Assembly: GCF_000189555.1 (NCBI RefSeq)
Contig: NC_017276.1
Strand: one strand, 5' to 3'
Source: Saccharolobus islandicus REY15A
Lineage (GTDB): Archaea > Thermoproteota > Thermoprotei_A > Sulfolobales > Sulfolobaceae
DNA length: 64,000 nt
The notes beneath the pieces were generated by a model that was given only the letters and a program-made list of their open reading frames with translations, was not told where the DNA came from and did not search any database. Positions 12,735-54,191 of the stretch are shown here, one piece after another (positions within the stretch are counted from its first letter, which is position 1; each line of letters begins with the position of its first letter). The position numbers and the translations under genes were made by a program.

Positions 12735-14735
12735 GTTAAGCATGTAAGTTACTATATCTTTTACGTATTTACCCGTTGATTTACTACTACTGATTCTCTT
12801 TAAAATCTTTTTATGATCGTATTTTGTCCTTTCCTCCCAAATTCTCACAGCATCTAAAAGCTTAGTTTTGGCTTCATAGTGATATTTACATAATCCATCC
12901 TTATACTGCTCCAGATCACAAAATTTACACTTTACAATTTTTATAAGGCCTAAAGCTTTAGCTAAGGACTCTCCTACTCTATCTTTATTTGCCTTATATT
13001 CCTCTATAAATTTATTTAATTTTTCTATATTTTCTTTAATAACCTCGCTTTCTAAAATTTTGCCAGTCTTTATCATTTCTAATTTATTTTCCATATCTGC
13101 AGTCATTCTAACATCAACTATATCCGGGAAAAATTTGTTTAATAGCTCAGCAATATAGAAACCTAATTTTGTCGGGACTATATAGCGCCCGTTACTAGTC
13201 AAATATCTCCTCTTCACTAGGATCTCAATTATTCTTCCTCTAGTAGCCTCTGTACCTAAGTCAGAAGATTCCATCCATTTAAGTAATGAAACCTTTGTAT
13301 ATCTAGAGGTGGGTTTACTTAAACTAATATTTACTTTTCCATCTGAAATTATACCCTCATCACCTTTTGAGAGAAGTATTGAATTATCTTCTCTTACATT
13401 ATGAAAGTGATATATATCTAGCCAATTTCTCTCTGGTATTTTTGTATATGAGACTGAGAACTCTAAGGGAAAATCAGCCACTTTCAAGGTGTAAATAGTG
13501 TTTGATAGTTTAGCATCGGCAGATACTGAAGCCAAAAATCTTCTTGCTATTAGGTCATATATCTTGAATTTGTTATTAGGTAAATTTTTAGGAGGTTCGC
13601 CAGTAGGGTGAATTGCGGGATGTGCGGGGTCGTCCTTAACGCCTTGCCTAACTATATATTTCCCTCCTGTAATTTTCCTCACTAAATTAACTAGCTTTCT
13701 ATACGAACTATTCTCCAAACCTTTGATTATATTGTAAATATTAATAGTTGAAGGTATTTTTTGACTATTAGTTCTTGGGTAACTTATTAGTCCGTCCAAA
13801 TAAAGATCTTCTGCTATACGTTCTACGTTATATGGAGATATACCATATATTCTGCCAGCTTCTACCTGGAGATCAGTGAGATTAAATGGAGGAGGTCTTT
13901 CTAATATTCTAATCTTATTTTCAACTTGCGTAACTTTTACGGTTTTATTTATTAATCTATTCAAAAATTCGTTTGCTTCAGTAAGTTTTTCGAATTCTTT
14001 ATTTATCTTAATATTCAGTGAATAATCTTTAATTTTTACAATAACTGAAACAGTGAATTTAGGTAATGGAATAAATAGGTTTCTTTCAATTTCCGAGTTG
14101 ACAACTTGGACGAGAGTTGGGCTTTGAACCCTGCCCGCACTTAATATCACTCTTTTCTTTGCGAAATCTTGTAAAGAAATCATAAGAGCTCTACTAACAT
14201 TAATTCCCCATAACCAGTCAATTTTATGCCTAGCTACTCCAGCGTTTATCATATCGTAATCTAATGTAGACACATTTCTAAATGCCGATAATATGTCACT
14301 TTTAGTCAGCGCTGAAAATTTCATTCGTTTAGCCTTCTTAGTATCACCCAGATATTTGATTATTAAATAGCCAATTACAGAACCTTCTATGTCGTAATCA
14401 CATGCATTGATAAAGCCTAAAGCGTACTTGCTAAGAGACGAGATAAGTTGATAGTACCTTTTTGTGTAGTAACTATTCTTATCAATCTCCCATAAAGGTT
14501 TCCAGTCGGCATCATATACAGGGAAACCACTCTTCCCTTGTAACCCAAAAAGATGTCCTGCCGCAGGGACAATAACATATTTATTGTTATTATCATGATC
14601 TTTTATTATCCAATAGTTAACGTTGTATTTTCTACATAAAATAGGTTTCTCTGAAAGAGCTTCAGCAATTTTTTTAGCTGCTTTTGACTTTTCTGCAATT
14701 ATAAGGTAATAGTTGTTTACATTACATAAATTCAT
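12699..14735 (-). CDS. topA: DNA topoisomerase I/III (type IA)
   Basis: TOPRIM motifs IIAEKSKAA and [18 protein letters not shown], catalytic Tyr in [15 protein letters not shown]. Confidence 0.96.
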
Positions 14736-14740
14736 CTTAT

Positions 14741-15028
14741 TTAACTCTTTCTAAGAGATAATAAAATTATTTTTCCATTTGGTAATCTTCTCCTAATAGT
14801 TATTGGAAGAACTCCTCTCTTAAACTCCTCCTCAGCTATACTAATAACATCAGTCAAACTTATGTTATTTATATCAATTAAGGCTGGTGCACCCATGGCT
14901 AGTTGTAATGCTCTAGCACTTATTACTCTGGCAATCTCGTATCTAGTTAGTTTATTCTGCCATAGAGAAACAAAAACTTCATTAAAATGTAAATCCTGGG
15001 ACAAAATTCCATCCCTCTCTAATCCCAT
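14741..15028 (-). CDS. rpo6: DNA-directed RNA polymerase subunit Rpo6 (K)
   Basis: [22 protein letters not shown] and [16 protein letters not shown]. Confidence 0.96.
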
Positions 15029-16140
15029 AAAACTTCAACTTTTAACTCTTCCGGCAACTCACATTCTTTTGGAATTTCAAACTCAACATTCTTTTTAATT
15101 ATTTCACTCATACTATTAACTAATCTTCTAATTGCTCTATCATCAACTACACCTAAAATCCCTATTCTTACTATTTTATCCCTTAATTCACCCATACCCT
15201 TAGTAATCTCAATATTTCTCTTCTTTAGCTCTGACATAAATGTATCTAAAGGAATAGGAGGAAACGCTGCAACTACCGTGTTGGAGAAATTAGCATCATT
15301 ACCTAACAATTTAAATCCCATCGTCGACATTACTCGCCTTAAATACCTTGCACAAGCTTCATGCCTCTTCCATCTATTTTCTATTCCTTCTTTATCCAGT
15401 AATTCAGCAGCCCTTCTAGAAGCAAAAAATGCTCCTACCGTAGGAGTAAATGGTGTCTCTCCTTTATCTTGAAACTTTAAATGAAGTGATAAATCTAGAT
15501 AACTAGGTAAATCGGATTCTACCAATTCATTCATGCCCTCATCAGACAACGCAGCGAATCCTACCCCAGGTATGCTTGCTAAAGCTTTCTGGCTGCCAGT
15601 TACTGCACAATCAATTTTCCACTGATTAACATATAGCGGATAGGCAGCAAACCCTGATACTGAATCAATAAGAAGCTTTAATCCTGCACTTTTTACAACA
15701 TCAGCTATCTTTTGAAGGTCTCTAAATGCTATACCCGTGCTAGTCTCATTATGAACTAACGCTACTGTAGTAGCGTCTTTATTTTCCTCAATAGCCTTTT
15801 TTATTTCCTCAAGTGTAAAGGTTTCCCCTATTTTTTTCTCGTAACTAATTACCTTTGCTCCACGTCTAACTAAAGATTCTTTTAATCTGTGTCCGAACTC
15901 GCCATAAGGGAATGTTAATACTTTCTCCTCTCTTTTTACCATTGAATAGACCATAGATTCTACAGCTAAGGTACCGGAGCCACTTAATAGTGCAACACGA
16001 GTAGATCCAAAATGTTTATTCATCAGAAACTCTAATGTTTTCACAGTTTCTCTAAATTTCTCTGATCTATGATTCACTAAATGAAGAGAAGCTTGTAGAA
16101 CACTATAAGGAACATTGACTGGACCGGGAATTAGCATCAT
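15019..16140 (-). CDS. Class V PLP aminotransferase (serine-pyruvate/phosphoserine aminotransferase, SerC role likely)
   Basis: [16 protein letters not shown] lysine motif TGSQKAL; directly downstream of serA. Confidence 0.8.
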
Positions 16141-17108
16141 TTGAGAACACCGATTTCTTTTAAAGAAGTGATGAGATTATCTGTTGTGACTACTGCTACT
16201 CTATACTGTGCTTCTTTAGTTTGAGCACCAATGTGAGTAGTTACTATCACTCTCTCATGTCTCAATAATTTAATCTCCCAATCTTCTTTAGGAGGTTCGT
16301 TCCACAAAACGTCTGTAGCATAAGTTAGTTGCTTTTTATCAATATATTCTAGTAATGCCTTACCATCTATTACTACGGCTCTACTGGTGTTGATTATGAT
16401 TGTATTATCTTTGACGTAATTAAATGTATCTTTGTTAAGGATTGGTTTAGCGTCTTTACCTACTGTAACGTGAAAGGTTATTACGTCTGAGTTCTTTAAC
16501 AATTCGTCTAAACTTTCAGCTACCTTGACTCCAAGCATATTCGCCTTTTCTTTTATATCGATAACATCATACGCAATTACGTTCATATCTAATGCCTTAC
16601 ATACCTTAGCTACTTTGGTACCAATTCGACCGAATCCTATAACACCTATAGTCTTACCTGCTAACTCAATTCCCTCTATTTTCTTGAATATGCCACCCTT
16701 TGCCATATTCATGGAATCATATAGTTTTCTAGCTGCTGTAAGAAGTAATCCTATAGTTAGTTCTGCTGCAGAATCTGTAGAAGCCCCTGCTGCATATACT
16801 ATTTTTATATTTCTCTTGGATGCCTCTTCTGTATCTATATTGTCTAGCCCTATCCCGGCTCTGGCTATAATCTTAAGATTAGTCCCATAACGGATTATCT
16901 CCTTATCTACCTTAGTTCTGCTTCTTACTACTAAAACCTGATACTGGTCTATTATCTTTAGTAATTCCTCTCTTGAAATTTCAGGTTTATAGTCAACTAT
17001 TAATCCATTGTTTTGTAAAGTTTTTATCATGTATTGATCTACTGGATCAGTTATTAATACTTTGAAATCTAATTTGTTTATAGAGTTTATACCCTGTATA
17101 GTTTCCAT
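16137..17108 (-). CDS. serA: D-3-phosphoglycerate dehydrogenase
   Basis: [22 protein letters not shown]-binding [16 protein letters not shown]. The ATG at 17108 follows SD AGGTGGT (17119-17113); the ORF track starts at an upstream GTG (17117). Confidence 0.88.
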
Positions 17109-17144
17109 ACATACCACCTGAAACTTTCAAGAATATGATTTAGT

Positions 17145-17264
17145 TTAACATGATGATGAGAATGAGCTTGAGAAAAATGAGGAGAATAAAATAATAATAA
17201 GATCTAATTTTCTTAAAAGTTGAGTAAATTCGAACTCCCTTTTCAGCATACTAGGGTTTTGCAT
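17145..17264 (-). CDS. Putative Ser-rich leader peptide (uORF) of the serA-serC operon, MQNPSMLKREFEFTQLLRKLDLIIILFSSFFSSSFSSSC
   Basis: Translated by hand: ATG 17264 to TAA 17145, 39 aa, with 8 Ser in codons 28-38. It lies between a TATA box (17301-17294) and serA. Confidence 0.5.
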   Translation of the reverse strand: MQNPSMLKREFEFTQLLRKLDLIIILFSSFFSSSFSSSC

Positions 17265-17293
17265 TATGATTCATATCAAACTACAACTACTGG

Positions 17294-17309
17294 TTTATAT
17301 TTTTTATTG
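17294..17309 (-). promoter_or_regulatory. BRE/TATA of the ser leader-serA transcript
   Basis: Minus strand CAATAAAAAATATAAAC: an A-rich BRE plus a TATA-like box about 30 nt before the uORF ATG. Confidence 0.55.
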
Positions 17310-17933
17310 CTACTTAACTATAGTATTAGTCTCCTTATACCATATAAACAAATCCAATATACCTACACTTATATTTAAATTTAAAGCGATGCTTTTCAAA
17401 ACACTCTCCAAAGATATATAGCGACTTTTTGATAAATGTTTAACGTTAGTTTCTCCTATCGCACCTATTCTCCTCATAAAATCTATAAGATGTCTGTCTA
17501 TAATTGCCAGATCGAAATAACCAACATTCCTAAGAAAGTGACTAGCTTCTTTCATCCCTATTCCTTTTATGTTTAATAACTTCTCCCTAGCCAATTGTTG
17601 ATCACTATCAGCTAAAGGCGTTATCTCCTCTTTTAACTTTCCATATACCTTCTCCCTAGCCATAATAATATATTTTGCCTTTAAATTATAAAATCTATAT
17701 TTACATGATTTAAGAATACTTCTGATTACTTCTTCATTAGCGTAGTAGATTTTGTCTCCCAAACAGTTTAGGGCCTGATAAGCCGAAATGAAAGATGAGT
17801 TAGCAGTTAGCAAACATAATGTGAGTTCCCTAAACCACACTTCCTCATTTGATAAATTATTTAACCTAAATTCGTCAACTCTTTCCAGAACTCTTGCTCT
17901 TACTCTTGGATTTTGAACTAGACTTCTTAGCAC
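17310..17933 (-). CDS. ogg: 8-oxoguanine DNA glycosylase/AP lyase (Ogg2 type)
   Basis: [12 protein letters not shown], HhH motif [24 protein letters not shown]; GTG start with SD GAGGAG at 17947-17942. Confidence 0.95.
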
Positions 17934-18396
17934 GCTTTTTACTCCTCTTTTTCTTCTTTTTAGCCCTCTTTACACTATCTTTCTTTTCAGGAATAGGTGG
18001 ATTAATATCTGACATTGATATTATTTTAGTACCATCATGAGTAAAGAATACTATAAATGGTAAATCTCTTTTAACCAAAACTCCACCAATAACATCGCTC
18101 ATATTTACATCAATTCTTGTAATCTGAACTTGATCTCCATTTGCAAATTGAGGAACACCTATGGAAATAACATTTAATGGGCGAGAGAATTGAAAGTCTA
18201 AATTAAATCTGCCATTGATATATTTCTCATTACTTCCCTCAATTATTACAACATCATTAGCCTCATCCGGCATTATTGATTCCAAATCACGAATTCCATC
18301 TATGATTTCAGCTTCTTTGGTTCTGCGTAAAGTATAAAGCAAAACAACATCGTTAATTTTTAAAGGTTCTAGCTTATAATACGATGCTAAGTTCAT
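17875..18396 (-). CDS. Hypothetical protein with a Lys/Ser-rich basic C-terminal tail
   Basis: 173 aa; ends [31 protein letters not shown] and overlaps the ogg start by 59 nt. Confidence 0.75.
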
Positions 18397-18505
18397 CTAA
18401 TAAATACACCTCTTCTTAGACTATAAAGTCTTTTAAAGTAGACAAAGGTATAACGTCGAGAATAAAAATTTAAGTTAATTTGCATGAAGTGGTAGTGGGT
18501 ATAAG

Positions 18506-18724
18506 ATGAGTATTAAAAACAGAGGCTCAAATGCATATGGGCATCTAGGATGGTTAACAGTATATTGTAGGATATGTAATAGGAAACTAGTAATAGGGAC
18601 AGATATTATCTACAAATGCCCTAAGTGTGAAAAGAAATATTCAGCATACTTCTGCGAAGCAGATAAGAGAGGATTAAAGGGGAAGTGCCCATATTGTGGG
18701 ACTGAGTTGGTACCGATTTTATGA
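18506..18724 (+). CDS. Small zinc-ribbon protein
   Basis: CRIC, CPKC, C-x10-CPYC in 72 aa. Confidence 0.75.
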   Translation: MSIKNRGSNAYGHLGWLTVYCRICNRKLVIGTDIIYKCPKCEKKYSAYFCEADKRGLKGKCPYCGTELVPIL

Positions 18725-19035
18725 CAGTAACACACTATAATATATATGGTCTAAATTTTTCTGTAATCTATGAGAATGAAATAGTAGTAGTATATATGGA
18801 TGTAAATAAAGAAATAAAGAGAAGAAAATATGCAGAAGATGAAGAAAGATTAGTATATATGGATGTAAATAAAGAAATAAAGAATGGAATATTGAGAAAG
18901 CTAATAATATGCAAAACTAAAATCTCATCTTACATTTGTAATGCAGTAGTAGAGGTTAATAATAAGAATATAAATGAGGAGTTACTCCTAAATCTCTATA
19001 ACGAAGTAGTAGAGGTTTCCGAAATTGTTATATAA
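18721..19035 (+). CDS. Hypothetical protein with an internal VYMDVNKEIK duplication
   Basis: ORF coupled to the upstream gene by a 4-nt overlap; repeated decapeptide. Confidence 0.65.
   Translation: MTVTHYNIYGLNFSVIYENEIVVVYMDVNKEIKRRKYAEDEERLVYMDVNKEIKNGILRKLIICKTKISSYICNAVVEVNNKNINEELLLNLYNEVVEVSEIVI
18788..18883 (+). repeat. Exact 33-bp direct repeat TAGTATATATGGATGTAAATAAAGAAATAAAGA
   Basis: Copies at 18788-18820 and 18851-18883; period 63 nt (21 codons), so in frame. Confidence 0.95.
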
Positions 19036-19310
19036 AAACCTTGTGATCTTAACCTATTATTAACTTCTTTCATGATCTCAGCAACATACGTCGCATTATT
19101 TGACATTATTTTAAGTGACGCATTCATATCTTTTGAAAGCTGAGAACTAAAATAGATCAAGAGGAGGGTATCCTGATTCGGAGCACAAATATACGATGCT
19201 CCTATTTTTACCGGTTCACATAGATCTTTAAATACATCATTAATGGATTGTGACAAGTACTTTATTCTAAAAGGATCTTCGGCTAAAATCTTGAATCTCA
19301 CTTCAAACAT
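18996..19310 (-). CDS. Hypothetical protein
   Basis: 104 aa ORF in a same-strand run, 4 nt from the upstream gene. Confidence 0.65.
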   Translation of the reverse strand: MFEVRFKILAEDPFRIKYLSQSINDVFKDLCEPVKIGASYICAPNQDTLLLIYFSSQLSKDMNASLKIMSNNATYVAEIMKEVNNRLRSQGFYITISETSTTSL

Positions 19311-19314
19311 TTTC

Positions 19315-19704
19315 TCACTTCTTCTTGTTAATATTTATTTTCTTGACCGGAATTTTAAGTTGCTCGGAAATTCTTTTTACAATTGTTACGTATTTATCAT
19401 CACCATCTATTAGCTTTAACTTTAACTTCCTATACTTCATTACTAATACGATTTTCCCATCATTAATTACAATTATCCTACCTATTACACGCCCGTATAG
19501 ATTCCTTAGAAGGAAAAGATAAACGTATGTGCCTTTATTTGGAATATTTACAATCTTTGCTTCACCTACCTTATATGTAGGTCTTACTACTTTTCCAGGC
19601 AATTCTATCTGCTGTATTACACCATTTACGTCTACTTTAAATAGGAAGGTTCTTAATACATGCTTATTTTTCCTGCTCCTCGAATTTTCTAACAATACTT
19701 CCAT
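19315..19704 (-). CDS. Hypothetical basic protein
   Basis: 129 aa, K/R-rich, overlapping the oxidoreductase end. Confidence 0.65.
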
Positions 19705-20659
19705 TCCCTCTCACACTCTTTAAGGATTCGATTATTCCATTCAAATCTATCTTATCTTCTAAATATGTATCTATGAGAACATCGTTCTTAAAGAATATTC
19801 TCATAAAATTCTTTCTTAAACTTAAACTAGAATATCTATATAGATCTAGTAGCATTTTCTGAATTTTAATTCTTTTCTCTATAATACTGAGCTTATCGTT
19901 AAGAAACTCATCCAGATCTTTTTCTTTATATATAGCCTCAAAAGCGTACTCAGCTGAAATAGCTGATGGCCTTATCCCTTCACCGCTTAGTGGGAAGACA
20001 AGCCCTCTTGCCTCACCTATCCTTAACTTCTTATTTTTAACACTCCCAATACTAATAGGAGCTCCTCTAACATCCTTAATTTCGAAATTCTTAAATTTCT
20101 TCCTCAAATAATAATAAAGTAATTCCTTTGAATTCTTATATTCCAAAAAACCAGCTCCGATATTATATTCATTTTCCCCGCTAGGAAATATCCAATAAAA
20201 ACCTGTATAATGAGTGTCGAATTCCAATATGGCCTCATCGTCAAACTCCTCAGTCTCTATTATGGCTCTAGTAGTATAAACTACCTCTCTATCCATTGGA
20301 TAAGGCCCTCTACTATCTATTACGTAATCAAAGTCTTTAATATTAAGATCATGAGTCACTATTATTTTTGAACTCTTTCGCATATCATTTATCCATTTCC
20401 ACTTATCTATAACCAGCCACTTAGTATGCCTATATTCAACATCGTAAATTTTTTCCCCATCTATATAGAAGGAGAACCTCTTTATACCAAACGTTTCATT
20501 CCAATTAAAGGGGGGTGTATAAACGTTTGGGACTATATCTCCACATGGTTTAACGTAGTATTGGTTAATATCAAAGATTGTAACTTCATTACTAATTCTT
20601 GAAAGTAAGTATGCCAAAGTAGAACCTGCTACTCCTCCTCCCAGAATTGCGATTCTCAT
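19664..20659 (-). CDS. FAD-dependent oxidoreductase, geranylgeranyl-reductase-like
   Basis: [25 protein letters not shown] and [19 protein letters not shown] (GGR-type GDAAG...P..GEGI). Confidence 0.8.
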
Positions 20660-30677: not shown

Positions 30678-30950
30678 TTAGTATGTTTCGAAATCCTCAA
30701 ATTCTCCCTTATATTCACTAAACGAGAAATCTACCTTCTCTACTTCAGCTGCTGGTGGACCTTGCTTAATACGTTCCAATAATTTACTTAACGCTTCCTC
30801 ATAACCTTCTGCAACCACTTCTACCGAACCATCGGGTAAATTCTTAGCATATCCCTTTATACCTAACCTTATAGCGTGAATTTGGACAAATTTTCTAAAA
30901 CCAACACCTTGCACTAGCCCATACACGCGAGCGTACATGCGCTTTAGCAT
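30678..30950 (-). CDS. acyP: Acylphosphatase
   Basis: [11 protein letters not shown] and [16 protein letters not shown] at 30950 lies 7 nt after SD GAGGTG (30963-30958). Confidence 0.95.
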
Positions 30951-31043
30951 TTTCAAACACCTCAGTGTCGCTCCACTTCTTCACAGATCTGTTTTTTCCC
31001 TTTCATCACAACATATTTTATCTAGTTATTTAACTTAAAGTTG

Positions 31044-48428: not shown

Positions 48429-50111
48429 ATGGCATCTCCAGTCTTATTGCTTAAAGAGGGAACGAGTAGAACTACTGGTAGAGATGCGTTAAGGAACAAT
48501 ATACTTGCTGCAAAGACACTAGCCGAAATGTTAAGGAGTAGTTTAGGTCCTAAAGGTCTTGATAAAATGTTAATTGATAGTTTCGGTGACGTAACCATAA
48601 CTAATGATGGCGCTACAATAGTAAAGGATATGGAGATACAGCATCCAGCAGCAAAGCTATTAGTAGAAGCAGCTAAAGCACAAGATGCTGAAGTAGGTGA
48701 TGGTACTACAAGCGCTGTAGTATTAGCTGGTGCTCTATTGGAGAAAGCTGAAAGTTTATTGGATCAAAATATACATCCAACAATAATCATTGAGGGGTAT
48801 AAGAAGGCATATACCAAGGCCTTGGAGTTACTTCCACAGTTAGGAACCAAGATCGATATAAGGGATTTGAATTCTTCAGTTTCTAGGGATACTCTAAGAA
48901 AGATAGCATTTACTACACTAGCAAGTAAGTTTATTGCAGAAGGTGCTGAATTAAATAAAATAATTGACATGGTAATAGACGCAATAGTTAATGTTGCAGA
49001 ACCTCTACCTAATGGTGGTTATAATGTGAGTTTAGACTTAATAAAGATAGATAAGAAGAAAGGTGGAAGTATAGAGGATAGCGTCTTAGTTAAAGGACTA
49101 GTATTAGATAAGGAGGTTGTGCACCCTGGAATGCCTAGAAGAGTCACTAAAGCCAAGATAGCTGTTTTGGATGCAGCATTAGAGGTAGAAAAACCTGAAA
49201 TCTCAGCTAAGATAAGTATAACATCACCAGAGCAAATCAAGGCTTTCTTAGATGAGGAATCCAAATATCTTAAGGACATGGTTGATAAACTAGCGTCAAT
49301 AGGTGCTAACGTTGTAATATGCCAGAAAGGTATTGATGATATCGCACAGCACTTCTTAGCTAAGAAAGGTATATTGGCTGTAAGAAGGGTTAAGAGGAGC
49401 GATATAGAGAAATTAGAGAAGGCATTAGGCGCGAGAATAATAAGCAGCATTAAAGACGCTACTCCCGATGATTTAGGATACGCTGAATTAGTTGAGGAAA
49501 GGAGAGTTGGAAATGACAAAATGGTATTTATAGAAGGTGCTAAGAACTTGAAAGCCGTAAATATCTTGTTAAGAGGTTCAAATGATATGGCATTAGATGA
49601 GGCTGAGAGGAGTATAAATGACGCATTGCATGCTCTGAGGAACATATTATTAGAGCCAGTAATATTGCCAGGTGGTGGTGCTATCGAGTTAGAATTAGCG
49701 ATGAAATTAAGAGAGTATGCTAGAAGTGTAGGAGGTAAGGAGCAATTAGCTATAGAAGCATTTGCAGATGCATTAGAGGAGATACCTATGATTTTAGCTG
49801 AAACTGCAGGGCTGGAGGCTATATCTGCACTAATGGACTTAAGAGCTAGACACGCTAAGGGATTAACCAATACTGGTGTAGATGTAATAGGTGGGAAGAT
49901 CGTAGACGATGTATATGCCTTAAACATCATTGAGCCTATAAGAGTAAAGGCTCAAGTGTTAAAGAGCGCAACAGAGGCAGCTACAGCAATATTAAAGATT
50001 GATGACCTAATAGCTGCAGCTCCATTAAAGAGCGAGAAGAAAGGTGGAGAAGGAAGTAAAGAAGAAAGTGGTGGAGAAGGAGGAGCTGGTACTCCATCTT
50101 TAGGAGACTGA
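48429..50111 (+). CDS. thsA: Thermosome subunit alpha (group II chaperonin)
   Basis: [34 protein letters not shown]; SD GTGAGGT. Confidence 0.95.
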
Positions 50112-53722: not shown

Positions 53723-53797
<75 letters not shown>

Positions 53798-54106
53798 TAC
53801 ACTTAAAGTGTGAAATAGTTCACGTCCGTTGCTTCAAAGCTAATGAAGAATTTTAGTTTTATTTATAGTGATAAGACTTACAACATTGGTTTAACTGGGG
53901 AGTTAATTACGGGCTATAAGCTTTTGCAAACTCCAGCTATAGTCTAAAAAAGTAAAATATTTCAGCAATTAACCAACTAGAGATAATTATTTACTAATCC
54001 TTGAAATATAGTGATATTTAGATATTATTTCTGAGAATTAGTATTCATTCAATATATTCTAAAACATTTAATCTTATAGATGAAATTTAATTGAGTTTAA
54101 AAACAG

Positions 54107-54191
54107 TGCGGGGGACGGGATTTGAACCCGTGCAGGCCTTCGCCAGCAGGGCCTAAGCCTGCCCCCTTTGACCTAGCTCGGGCACCCCCGC
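54107..54191 (-). tRNA. tRNA-Leu (anticodon UAG), long variable arm
   Basis: Acceptor GCGGGGG/CCCCCGC plus discriminator A, anticodon arm GCAGG-CTTAGGC-CCTGC, T arm ACGGG-TTCAAAT-CCCGT. Confidence 0.96.

Follow-up and report, generated by a model that had tools for sequence, protein, structure and literature searches.

A serine-codon-rich leader open reading frame conserved upstream of serA in Sulfolobales as a candidate sensor of tRNA charging

Introduction

Leader-peptide attenuation is a textbook bacterial mechanism. In the attenuators trpL, hisL, thrL, leuL, pheL and ilvL/ivbL, a short open reading frame (ORF) is found directly upstream of a co-oriented biosynthetic operon, and the same arrangement is described here for the serA operon of an archaeon. 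To our knowledge, serine is not one of the classical attenuator amino acids. The mycobacterial polycysteine leaderless short ORFs, whose mechanism was reportedly tested with reporters by Canestrari et al. 2020 (Mol Microbiol), resemble the archaeal case in that they are leaderless or nearly so, are rich in one residue, lie upstream of genes for the metabolism of that amino acid and are proposed to act on the downstream cistron through ribosome stalling. The element studied here is an upstream ORF (uORF) in front of serA on the minus strand of a 64,000-nucleotide (nt) stretch of the Saccharolobus islandicus REY15A genome (contig NC_017276.1), which is called the window below.

The uORF ends in a run of Ser codons that is conserved across the order Sulfolobales. 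On the strength of its sequence and of those of its relatives, the leader peptide is probably a sensor of charged Ser (and Cys/Trp) tRNA for the serA-aminotransferase operon. In the full-text literature, to which subscription papers did not belong, we found no prior account of the serA leader or of any archaeal amino-acid leader peptide, and a 2026 review of S. acidocaldarius makes no mention of attenuation, uORF, leader peptide or riboswitch. Leader-peptide sensing is known in bacteria; the serA leader differs in the domain of life, in the amino acid and apparently in the way the signal is transferred.

Results and Discussion

The Ser-rich uORF is conserved with serA

A preliminary description, made from the letters of the window alone, had reported a 39-codon minus-strand uORF with a Ser-run tail, preceded by a B recognition element (BRE) and TATA box and flanked by ogg, serA and a class V aminotransferase gene. 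Re-reading of the sequence reproduced the uORF to the base and located TATAAA ahead of it, and the Pfam domains of the neighbours (Ogg-HhH, 2-Hacid_dh for SerA and class V aminotransferase) agreed with the names given to them. The coordinates are listed in Table 1. The last codons of the uORF are TCC TCA TTT TTC TCA AGC TCA TTC TCA TCA TCA TGT TAA, in which 8 of 11 consecutive codons specify Ser (six TCA, one TCC and one AGC) and the final sense codon is Cys UGU.

We compared 34 Sulfolobales serA loci, namely the window and 33 others (L001-L003, L025-L044 and L105-L114), which together hold 24 distinct leader sequences. The loci were gathered blind to the leader, by a genome scan, by an alignment-based metagenome scan with SerA proteins and by exact-protein look-ups in named genomes. 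The single-protein genome scan gave 3 Sulfolobales loci and the other two routes gave the remainder. The named genomes are those of S. acidocaldarius DSM 639, Sulfurisphaera tokodaii, Acidianus hospitalis, Metallosphaera tengchongensis, Sulfuracidifex tepidarius, Sulfodiicoccus acidiphilus, Sulfolobales strain HS-7 and S. tengchongensis, and the sample includes two Metallosphaera.

An ATG-started uORF of 31-39 codons is present in all 34 loci. Its anatomy is shared: a strong TATA box, an ATG about 30 nt further on, the Ser-rich uORF, its stop codon, a short spacer, a GGTGA-type Shine-Dalgarno (SD) sequence and the serA ATG. The stop codon is TAA in 23 of the 24 distinct leaders and is followed by A in 19 of them; the spacer from this stop to serA measures 18-41 nt in all Sulfolobales taxa. 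An SD sequence (GGTGA, GGTGG, GGGTG or GAGGT) lies within about 20 nt of the serA ATG at every locus. The uORF frame is free of stops in 24/24 leaders, and the remaining two frames are open in 0/24 and 2/24. Reading the tract in its His-rich or Ile/Leu-rich alternative frames was tried and rejected, as these frames have stops or lack starts in most taxa.

The conservation is concentrated in the tail. Pairwise identity of the uORF peptides rises from 15% in the first 18 residues to 39% in the last 12, and Ser makes up 53% of the tail versus 7.7% of the remainder of the ORF across taxa. The divergence of the heads to near-random shows the tails to be held by selection. Serine is retained through TCA, TCT, TCC and AGC, and through TCG TCG TCG in the GC-richer Sulfodiicoccus-type loci. 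Because differing codons keep the same residue, the constraint acts on the amino acid or its tRNAs and not on a nucleotide repeat alone. The leader stays with serA where the upstream neighbour is not ogg (L112 and L113), and judged by these loci the uORF is tied to serA rather than to ogg. The comparison across Sulfolobales that the preliminary description had called for thus finds the frame, the Ser run and the distances to promoter and serA persisting while synonymous Ser codons vary. The conserved Ser-codon leader linked to serA-serC stands; the U-tract that the same description had proposed as a termination signal gains no support from the comparison (see below).

Outside the order, a comparable uORF is absent upstream of serA in the Nitrososphaeria loci (L004-L016), in Vulcanisaeta (L115) and in L045, L046 and L118; apparent Ser-uORF matches there proved to be off-frame readings of neighbouring genes. 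Short, doubtful ORFs precede serA in Pyrodictium (L116) and on the GC-rich contig L117. The latter, whose SerA is 54% identical, carries a 16-codon ORF (MTLLTAPSSSTPGASY, then stop) at 1375-1430, ending 73 nt before serA, which may be a divergent leader or a chance ORF. Within our sample, the sequences mark the leader as a trait of the order Sulfolobales.

The Ser run is also exceptional against two backgrounds. When every ATG ORF of 12-70 codons on both strands of the window was ranked by enrichment of a single residue in its last 12 positions, the uORF came first with 8 Ser, and the runner-up had 6 Leu. It also ranks first among the small intergenic ORFs upstream of a co-oriented gene. Among the relatives, the uORFs have a mean of 6.4 Ser in the last 12 residues versus a mean of 1.39 and a maximum of 5 in 203 background ORFs of 25-45 codons from the same loci (Mann-Whitney p=3e-15), a p-value that, like those below, overstates independence because the leader sequences are related by descent. 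These comparative data argue strongly against the chance (TCA)n low-complexity tract that had been offered as the alternative.

Codon choice and Cys/Trp codons in the tail

The tails differ from serA itself in how Ser is encoded. TCA accounts for 92/153 Ser codons in the tails (60%) versus 34/317 in serA (11%; p=1e-28), and AGT for 1/153 (0.7%) versus 77/317 (24%; p=1e-13). In Bacillus subtilis under serine starvation, ribosomes were slowed at UCN codons and not at AGC/AGU (PMC3862929). The UCA-over-AGU bias of the tails fits a tRNA sensor, as the same split between UCN and AGC/AGU codons is seen in that bacterium.

A second regularity concerns Cys and Trp. Every one of the 24 distinct tails contains at least one Cys or Trp codon. 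These two residues together make up 10.4% of the tails, 0.7% of the heads and 0.8% of the SerA proteins, and 15 leaders have Cys and 3 have Trp as the last sense codon of the uORF. Serine is the precursor of both cysteine and tryptophan, and for this reason the leader looks multivalent for the serine family. Neither the Cys/Trp codon in the tail, nor the UCA-over-AGU bias, nor the order-wide conservation had been part of the preliminary description.

In strain HS-7 (L113, 2370-2470) the tail reads YWSCWQ before the stop, so that two Trp, one Cys and one Ser replace the Ser run. Going by this tail, sensing in HS-7 may be directed at the amino acids made from serine.

The junction of Ser and Cys/Trp codons has a further consequence at the end of the uORF (17140-17151, minus strand), where UCA directly before UGU or UGG gives rise to an AUG in another frame. 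The mini-ORF that it opens, AUG UUA AAC UAA, encodes MLN and has counterparts in most taxa (MLK, MLNF, MVNIE and others, each followed by a stop). It may be a by-product of the Ser-Cys/Trp-stop order or something more.

Promoter and leader transcript

The putative promoter of the leader-serA transcript follows directly on the stop codon of ogg (17312-17310). In 22 of the 24 distinct leaders, a TATA-like hexamer ends 28-34 nt ahead of the uORF ATG. The spacing from TATA box to transcription start site (TSS) in Sulfolobus is usually about 24-27 nt. With the start site predicted from the TATA-to-ATG distance (Table 1), the uORF would be near-leaderless, with a 5' untranslated region (UTR) of a few nt.

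A second ATG, in another frame, precedes that of the uORF by 10 nt (17251-17274, minus strand); it opens 7 codons encoding MNHNAKP and is also kept in the Saccharolobus relatives L001, L043 and L114. As it lies only about 19 nt past the TATA box, this ATG probably precedes the TSS.

Between the TATA box and the predicted TSS there is an AGTAG/AGTAA-like word (AGTAGTTGTAG, 17281-17291, minus strand). A word of this kind occurs 3-10 nt past the TATA box in most Sulfolobales leader promoters (L001, L002, L027-L034, L107, L110 and L114), beside uORF heads of near-random sequence, and may serve a further transcription factor as operator.

We also considered TGTTAAAC as a second TATA box, serving serA. 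It lies 18-41 nt from the serA ATG, a range incompatible with a fixed TSS and use of the SD sequence. In many taxa the TSS would then fall within the SD or the coding region, and TGTTAAAC was therefore rejected as a TATA box.

Published data are available for the leader of S. acidocaldarius (L106, NC_007181), in which the uORF maps to 1168218-1168337 and the serA ATG to 1168374. A re-analysis of differential RNA sequencing (dRNA-seq) lists 5'-monophosphate ends of the serA strand at 1168227, 1168270 and 1168289 within the uORF, where DIFF is 104-120, and a further one at 1168351 in the spacer (PMC12817955 File S3). The DIFF values of sites inside serA are 10-24 (PMC12817955 File S3), so that those of the leader sites are 5-10 times higher. 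These ends show that the serA strand of the S. acidocaldarius leader is transcribed and that its RNA is either abundant or heavily processed; the data cover one growth condition and 5' ends only. The published 5' UTR supplement has no entry for the leader locus, searches by locus tag gave no result, and the literature searched yielded no ribosome profiling (Ribo-seq) of Sulfolobus.

The serA operon and its enzymes

The SerA protein of the window has a substrate-binding and a nucleotide-binding domain only and is therefore assigned to type III D-3-phosphoglycerate dehydrogenase (PGDH). The nearest solved structure is 2EKL, D-3-phosphoglycerate dehydrogenase of S. tokodaii (E=1.4e-133). The protein is identical to the cluster representative P0001, which is present on 276 contigs, and the members of the cluster bear the names Saccharolobus/Sulfolobus islandicus, S. 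solfataricus and S. shibatae. Enzymes of type III have no ACT domain, and serine exerts no feedback inhibition on them (PMC6300728). Because such an enzyme escapes inhibition by serine, end-product control would have to act on its expression.

The serA stop is overlapped by 4 nt by the aminotransferase gene, which in turn overlaps rpoK. The aminotransferase falls in the class V group of serine, alanine-glyoxylate or phosphoserine enzymes; in the PDB it has serine, alanine-glyoxylate or serine-pyruvate aminotransferases for relatives. Across Sulfolobales the genes keep the order ogg, leader, serA, class V aminotransferase, rpoK (Rpb6) (14741-17933 of the window, minus strand). Since both this order and the overlapping stops and starts are conserved, the gene of an RNA polymerase subunit, rpoK, may be co-transcribed with a serine-controlled operon.

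Table 1. Features of the leader-serA region (positions in the window)
Feature	Position	Strand	Remarks
BRE/TATA promoter of the leader-serA transcript (putative)	17309-17294	minus	TATAAA at 17299-17294; A-rich; 29 nt before the uORF ATG; function predicted from geometry
Predicted TSS	17272-17268	minus	about 4-8 nt upstream of the uORF ATG; predicted from the TATA-to-ATG distance
uORF	17264-17145	minus	39 codons and TAA; MQNPSMLKREFEFTQLLRKLDLIIILFSSFFSSSFSSSC, then stop; between ogg and serA
uORF tail, last 12 sense codons	17183-17148	minus	S S F F S S S F S S S C
uORF stop, UAA then A	17147-17145	minus	sequence read
Spacer, uORF stop to serA ATG	17144-17109	minus	36 nt; holds the SD and the pyrimidine word UUCUU
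serA SD, GGTGG	17118-17114	minus	sequence read
serA, type III D-3-phosphoglycerate dehydrogenase	17108-16137	minus	323 amino acids; Pfam 2-Hacid_dh and 2-Hacid_dh_C, no ACT domain
Class V aminotransferase, likely the phosphoserine aminotransferase of the pathway	16140-15019	minus	Pfam Aminotran_5

The window contains no other leader-like ORF. A Leu-rich ORF at 49981-50097 was considered as a leader and rejected, as it lies antisense within a 560-amino-acid ORF. A 33-codon ORF on the plus strand (30937-31038), with a stretch of 8 residues that holds 4 Ser, stops 3 nt short of the gene of myo-inositol-1-phosphate synthase, probably by chance. Two tRNA genes are present in the window, tRNA-Arg(TCG) at 53723-53797 (plus) and tRNA-Leu(TAG) at 54106-54191 (minus), and no tRNA-Ser gene.

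Proposed mechanism and RNA structure

We propose the following course of events. The transcript would begin a few nt before the uORF AUG, and for this reason ribosomes would load at its 5' end. The peptide itself would be irrelevant, since its N-terminal two thirds are unconserved. When serine is plentiful, the ribosome would pass the UCA-rich tail and terminate at the UAA. When serine (or Cys/Trp) is scarce, it would stall on a hungry UCA, UGU or UGG codon within the last 12 codons. The footprint of the stalled ribosome would extend from the pyrimidine-rich tail over the stop codon into the start of the spacer, and would thereby prevent the pyrimidine tract from pairing with the purine-rich ribosome-binding site (RBS) of serA 18-41 nt downstream. 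The freed RBS would allow more synthesis of SerA and the aminotransferase, without the terminator and antiterminator hairpins of bacteria. From the anatomy of the leader we infer that the uORF is translated, that ribosomes stall on it, and in which direction and at which step regulation acts. This is the best explanation that we can offer, and on sequence grounds its core, a sensor of tRNA charging, is reasonably likely. Should the leader be a sensor, unmasking of the RBS is our tentative choice of output, to which we give less than an even chance.

Several features of the RNA are consistent with such an output. In all taxa the tail and spacer are pyrimidine-rich and poor in G, facing the purine-rich SD. 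UCAUC is complementary to GGUGA if one G-U pair is included, and CUUCUU-type pyrimidine words recur in the spacers across taxa. When the 24 leaders were folded with RNAfold at 37 C, the SD paired chiefly with the Ser run in roughly half of them; in several others its main partner was a CUUCUU-type word of the spacer. Masking the last Ser codon with a ribosome lowered the mean predicted probability that the SD is paired from 0.72 to 0.57 at 60 C.

A number of results weigh against the proposal. The fold of the window leader is no better than that of its shuffles (z=-0.52), and RNAalifold found 0 conserved base pairs and no covariation in the 24 aligned tails and spacers. CUGAAA (17246-17241) and UUUCAG (17123-17118), next to the SD, are both present in the window leader, as had been pointed out in the preliminary description, but the 6-bp pairing proposed for them gains no support. 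The SD is just as likely to be paired in native leaders as in composition-preserving shuffles (mean z 0.06-0.2), and the predicted minimum free energy (MFE) is about 0 at 75 C for most leaders. The UCA bias could stem from a nucleotide-level constraint instead of tRNA choice. The direction of the pathway is assumed from the S. tokodaii PGDH homologue, and the specificity that we assign to the aminotransferase is likewise assumed and unproven. The relatedness of the leaders, as said above, makes the p-values smaller than independent sequences would give.

The same results speak against two more specific structures. An SD-sequestering helix that evolved for this purpose gains no support, as native leaders are indistinguishable from shuffles. 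Bacterial antiterminator and terminator hairpins with a U-run are ruled out by the fold z-score, by the lack of RNAalifold pairs and by the absence of a conserved T-run by eye. A search of described RNA families gave no Rfam match in the leader (17100-17320, E<=1; the scan spanned 14000-20000).

Alternative explanations

The same sensor could instead have an output at the level of the RNA. Here the stalled ribosome would hide a site at which a factor loads or cleaves, so that transcription or the mRNA continues into serA; candidate factors are aCPSF1/FttA, an aCPSF2/RNase J-type 5'-3' exonuclease, an endonuclease or an Sm-like protein. Shielding from aCPSF1 had already been proposed in the preliminary description, and the logic is that of tnaC/Rho of E. 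coli. FttA-dependent termination of untranslated RNA is said to have been established in archaea by Sanders et al. 2020 and Yue et al. 2020. The lack of hairpins to carry a signal speaks for such an output, as does the pyrimidine-rich, G-poor character of tail and spacer in all taxa. The excess of 5'-monophosphate ends in the S. acidocaldarius leader over serA would be expected if the leader were cut or present in excess; against this, the data come from a single growth condition and do not cover 3' ends.

The U-rich signal on which termination was thought to depend finds no backing in the comparison. By eye, T4+ runs occur in about 8/24 spacers and T5+ runs in about 10/24 uORF bodies, close to a rough estimate from base composition, and they are not conserved. 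Moreover, aCPSF1 has no defined binding motif, and a ribosome stalled upstream would uncouple from RNA polymerase, which should favour termination. We regard an output at the RNA level as rather unlikely, though next in likelihood after unmasking of the RBS. We give a similarly small chance to its most specific form, a hairpin-free, ribosome-mediated attenuator, multivalent for Ser, Cys and Trp, that masks the pyrimidine tract from aCPSF1/FttA or from a 5'-3' exonuclease. If true, this would give Archaea their first amino-acid-sensing leader peptide, with a direct link from the charging of tRNA to the termination of transcription or the survival of mRNA.

In a third reading the sign is reversed. 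Translation of the uORF would be needed for serA, through reinitiation or through protection from polarity, and stalling at Ser codons would lower expression. This would suit an operon used at high serine, with a hydroxypyruvate reductase and a serine aminotransferase, and it would also suit plain delivery of ribosomes. The enzyme families do include hydroxypyruvate reductases and serine:pyruvate aminotransferases; however, 2EKL, the nearest homologue, was deposited as D-3-phosphoglycerate dehydrogenase, a biosynthetic enzyme. Short spacers throughout (18-41 nt) and a stop that is nearly always UAA fit reinitiation, yet a strong SD of its own precedes serA in every taxon. This reading needs no RNA structure, and none is conserved. 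Delivery alone leaves the conservation of Ser/Cys/Trp and the UCA-over-AGU bias unexplained. We consider positive coupling improbable.

It is more improbable still that the tract is non-coding, as a promoter, operator or RNA-binding site or as a chance (TCA)n run, with the frame incidental. Two observations favour this view: the terminal TCA TCA TCA TGT TAA is nucleotide-invariant within Saccharolobus, and TGTTAAAC resembles a weak TATA element. Against it, AGC and TCG Ser codons break the nucleotide repeat, the frame is open in 24/24 leaders from an ATG at a fixed distance from the TATA box while the other frames are closed, and Rfam has no match.

The least probable reading by our estimate, a functional micro-protein (a small membrane or Cys-terminal peptide) that chances to adjoin serA, would account for the conserved ORF, for the many hydrophobic heads and for the 46-codon version called as a gene, without a name, in S. 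acidocaldarius assemblies (P0132, 117 contigs), but the first 18 residues are near random and only the composition of the tail is kept, the length varies between 31 and 39 codons at an unfailing 18-41 nt from serA, and a collection of 15 billion proteins lacks 7 of the 8 leader peptides tested and contains the eighth without a name.

Significance and comparison with known systems

The translational sensor that we favour would explain how a type III phosphoglycerate dehydrogenase without an ACT domain is brought under end-product control. Without hairpins, the output step must proceed otherwise than in bacteria, and it could expose how translation talks to archaeal initiation, to aCPSF1/FttA termination or to decay at 75-80 C. 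The leader spans the whole order, including the genetically tractable S. acidocaldarius and S. islandicus; conserved in such models, it makes feedback from tRNA charging in archaea testable by simple reporters. It could also yield a compact serine-responsive part for the engineering of Sulfolobus, and it suggests that similar leaders are worth seeking in other archaeal biosynthetic operons.

Compared with the bacterial attenuators, the serA leader has the product codons clustered near the end of the ORF and the remaining peptide unconserved, as they do. Its regulatory codons are of kinds that are rare in the adjacent serA, which is also a feature of the bacterial systems. Multivalence has precedents in thrL (Thr and Ile) and ilvL (Leu, Val and Ile), to which Ser with Cys/Trp in the serA leader is the counterpart. 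Unlike the bacterial attenuators, it has no pause, antiterminator or terminator hairpins and no hairpin with a U-run, it works with archaeal RNA polymerase and termination factors, and its uORF is apparently near-leaderless. The mycobacterial polycysteine ORFs belong to another domain of life, concern another amino acid and share no homology with the serA leader; they have reportedly been tested with reporters, whereas the serA leader is known from sequence.

The ermCL and catA86/cmlA leaders show the step that we propose for serA, a stall a few tens of nt upstream that frees the next RBS, and the 18-41 nt spacer of the serA leader puts the stall at a similarly short distance from the SD. In the erm and cat systems a drug and the nascent peptide cause the stall and a defined hairpin covers the RBS, whereas in the serA leader uncharged tRNA would be the trigger and no specific hairpin is supported. 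The tnaC/Rho system of the E. coli tna operon is the closest parallel for an RNA-level output of the serA leader, being independent of hairpins, with a ribosome at the leader end that masks a factor site on pyrimidine-rich RNA. However, tnaC senses free Trp through the nascent peptide, its ribosome stalls at the stop codon and its factor is Rho, and the archaeal aCPSF1/FttA site is hypothetical.

In eukaryotes, the GCN4 uORFs and the arginine attenuator peptide (CPA1/arg-2) also precede amino-acid biosynthesis genes and are read by a eukaryotic-type ribosome, as the serA leader would be. GCN4 depends on scanning and reinitiation controlled by eIF2 and the arginine attenuator on a conserved peptide, whereas the peptide of the serA leader is unconserved and serA has its own SD. 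With regard to the codons, the nearest relative is sinR of B. subtilis (Subramaniam et al. 2013, PMC3862929). There the sensing codons lie within the regulated gene and in serA they lie in an upstream leader, but UCN codons, unlike AGC/AGU, are the ones that hold up ribosomes at low serine in B. subtilis, and the serA leader uses UCN codons, chiefly UCA, and avoids AGU.

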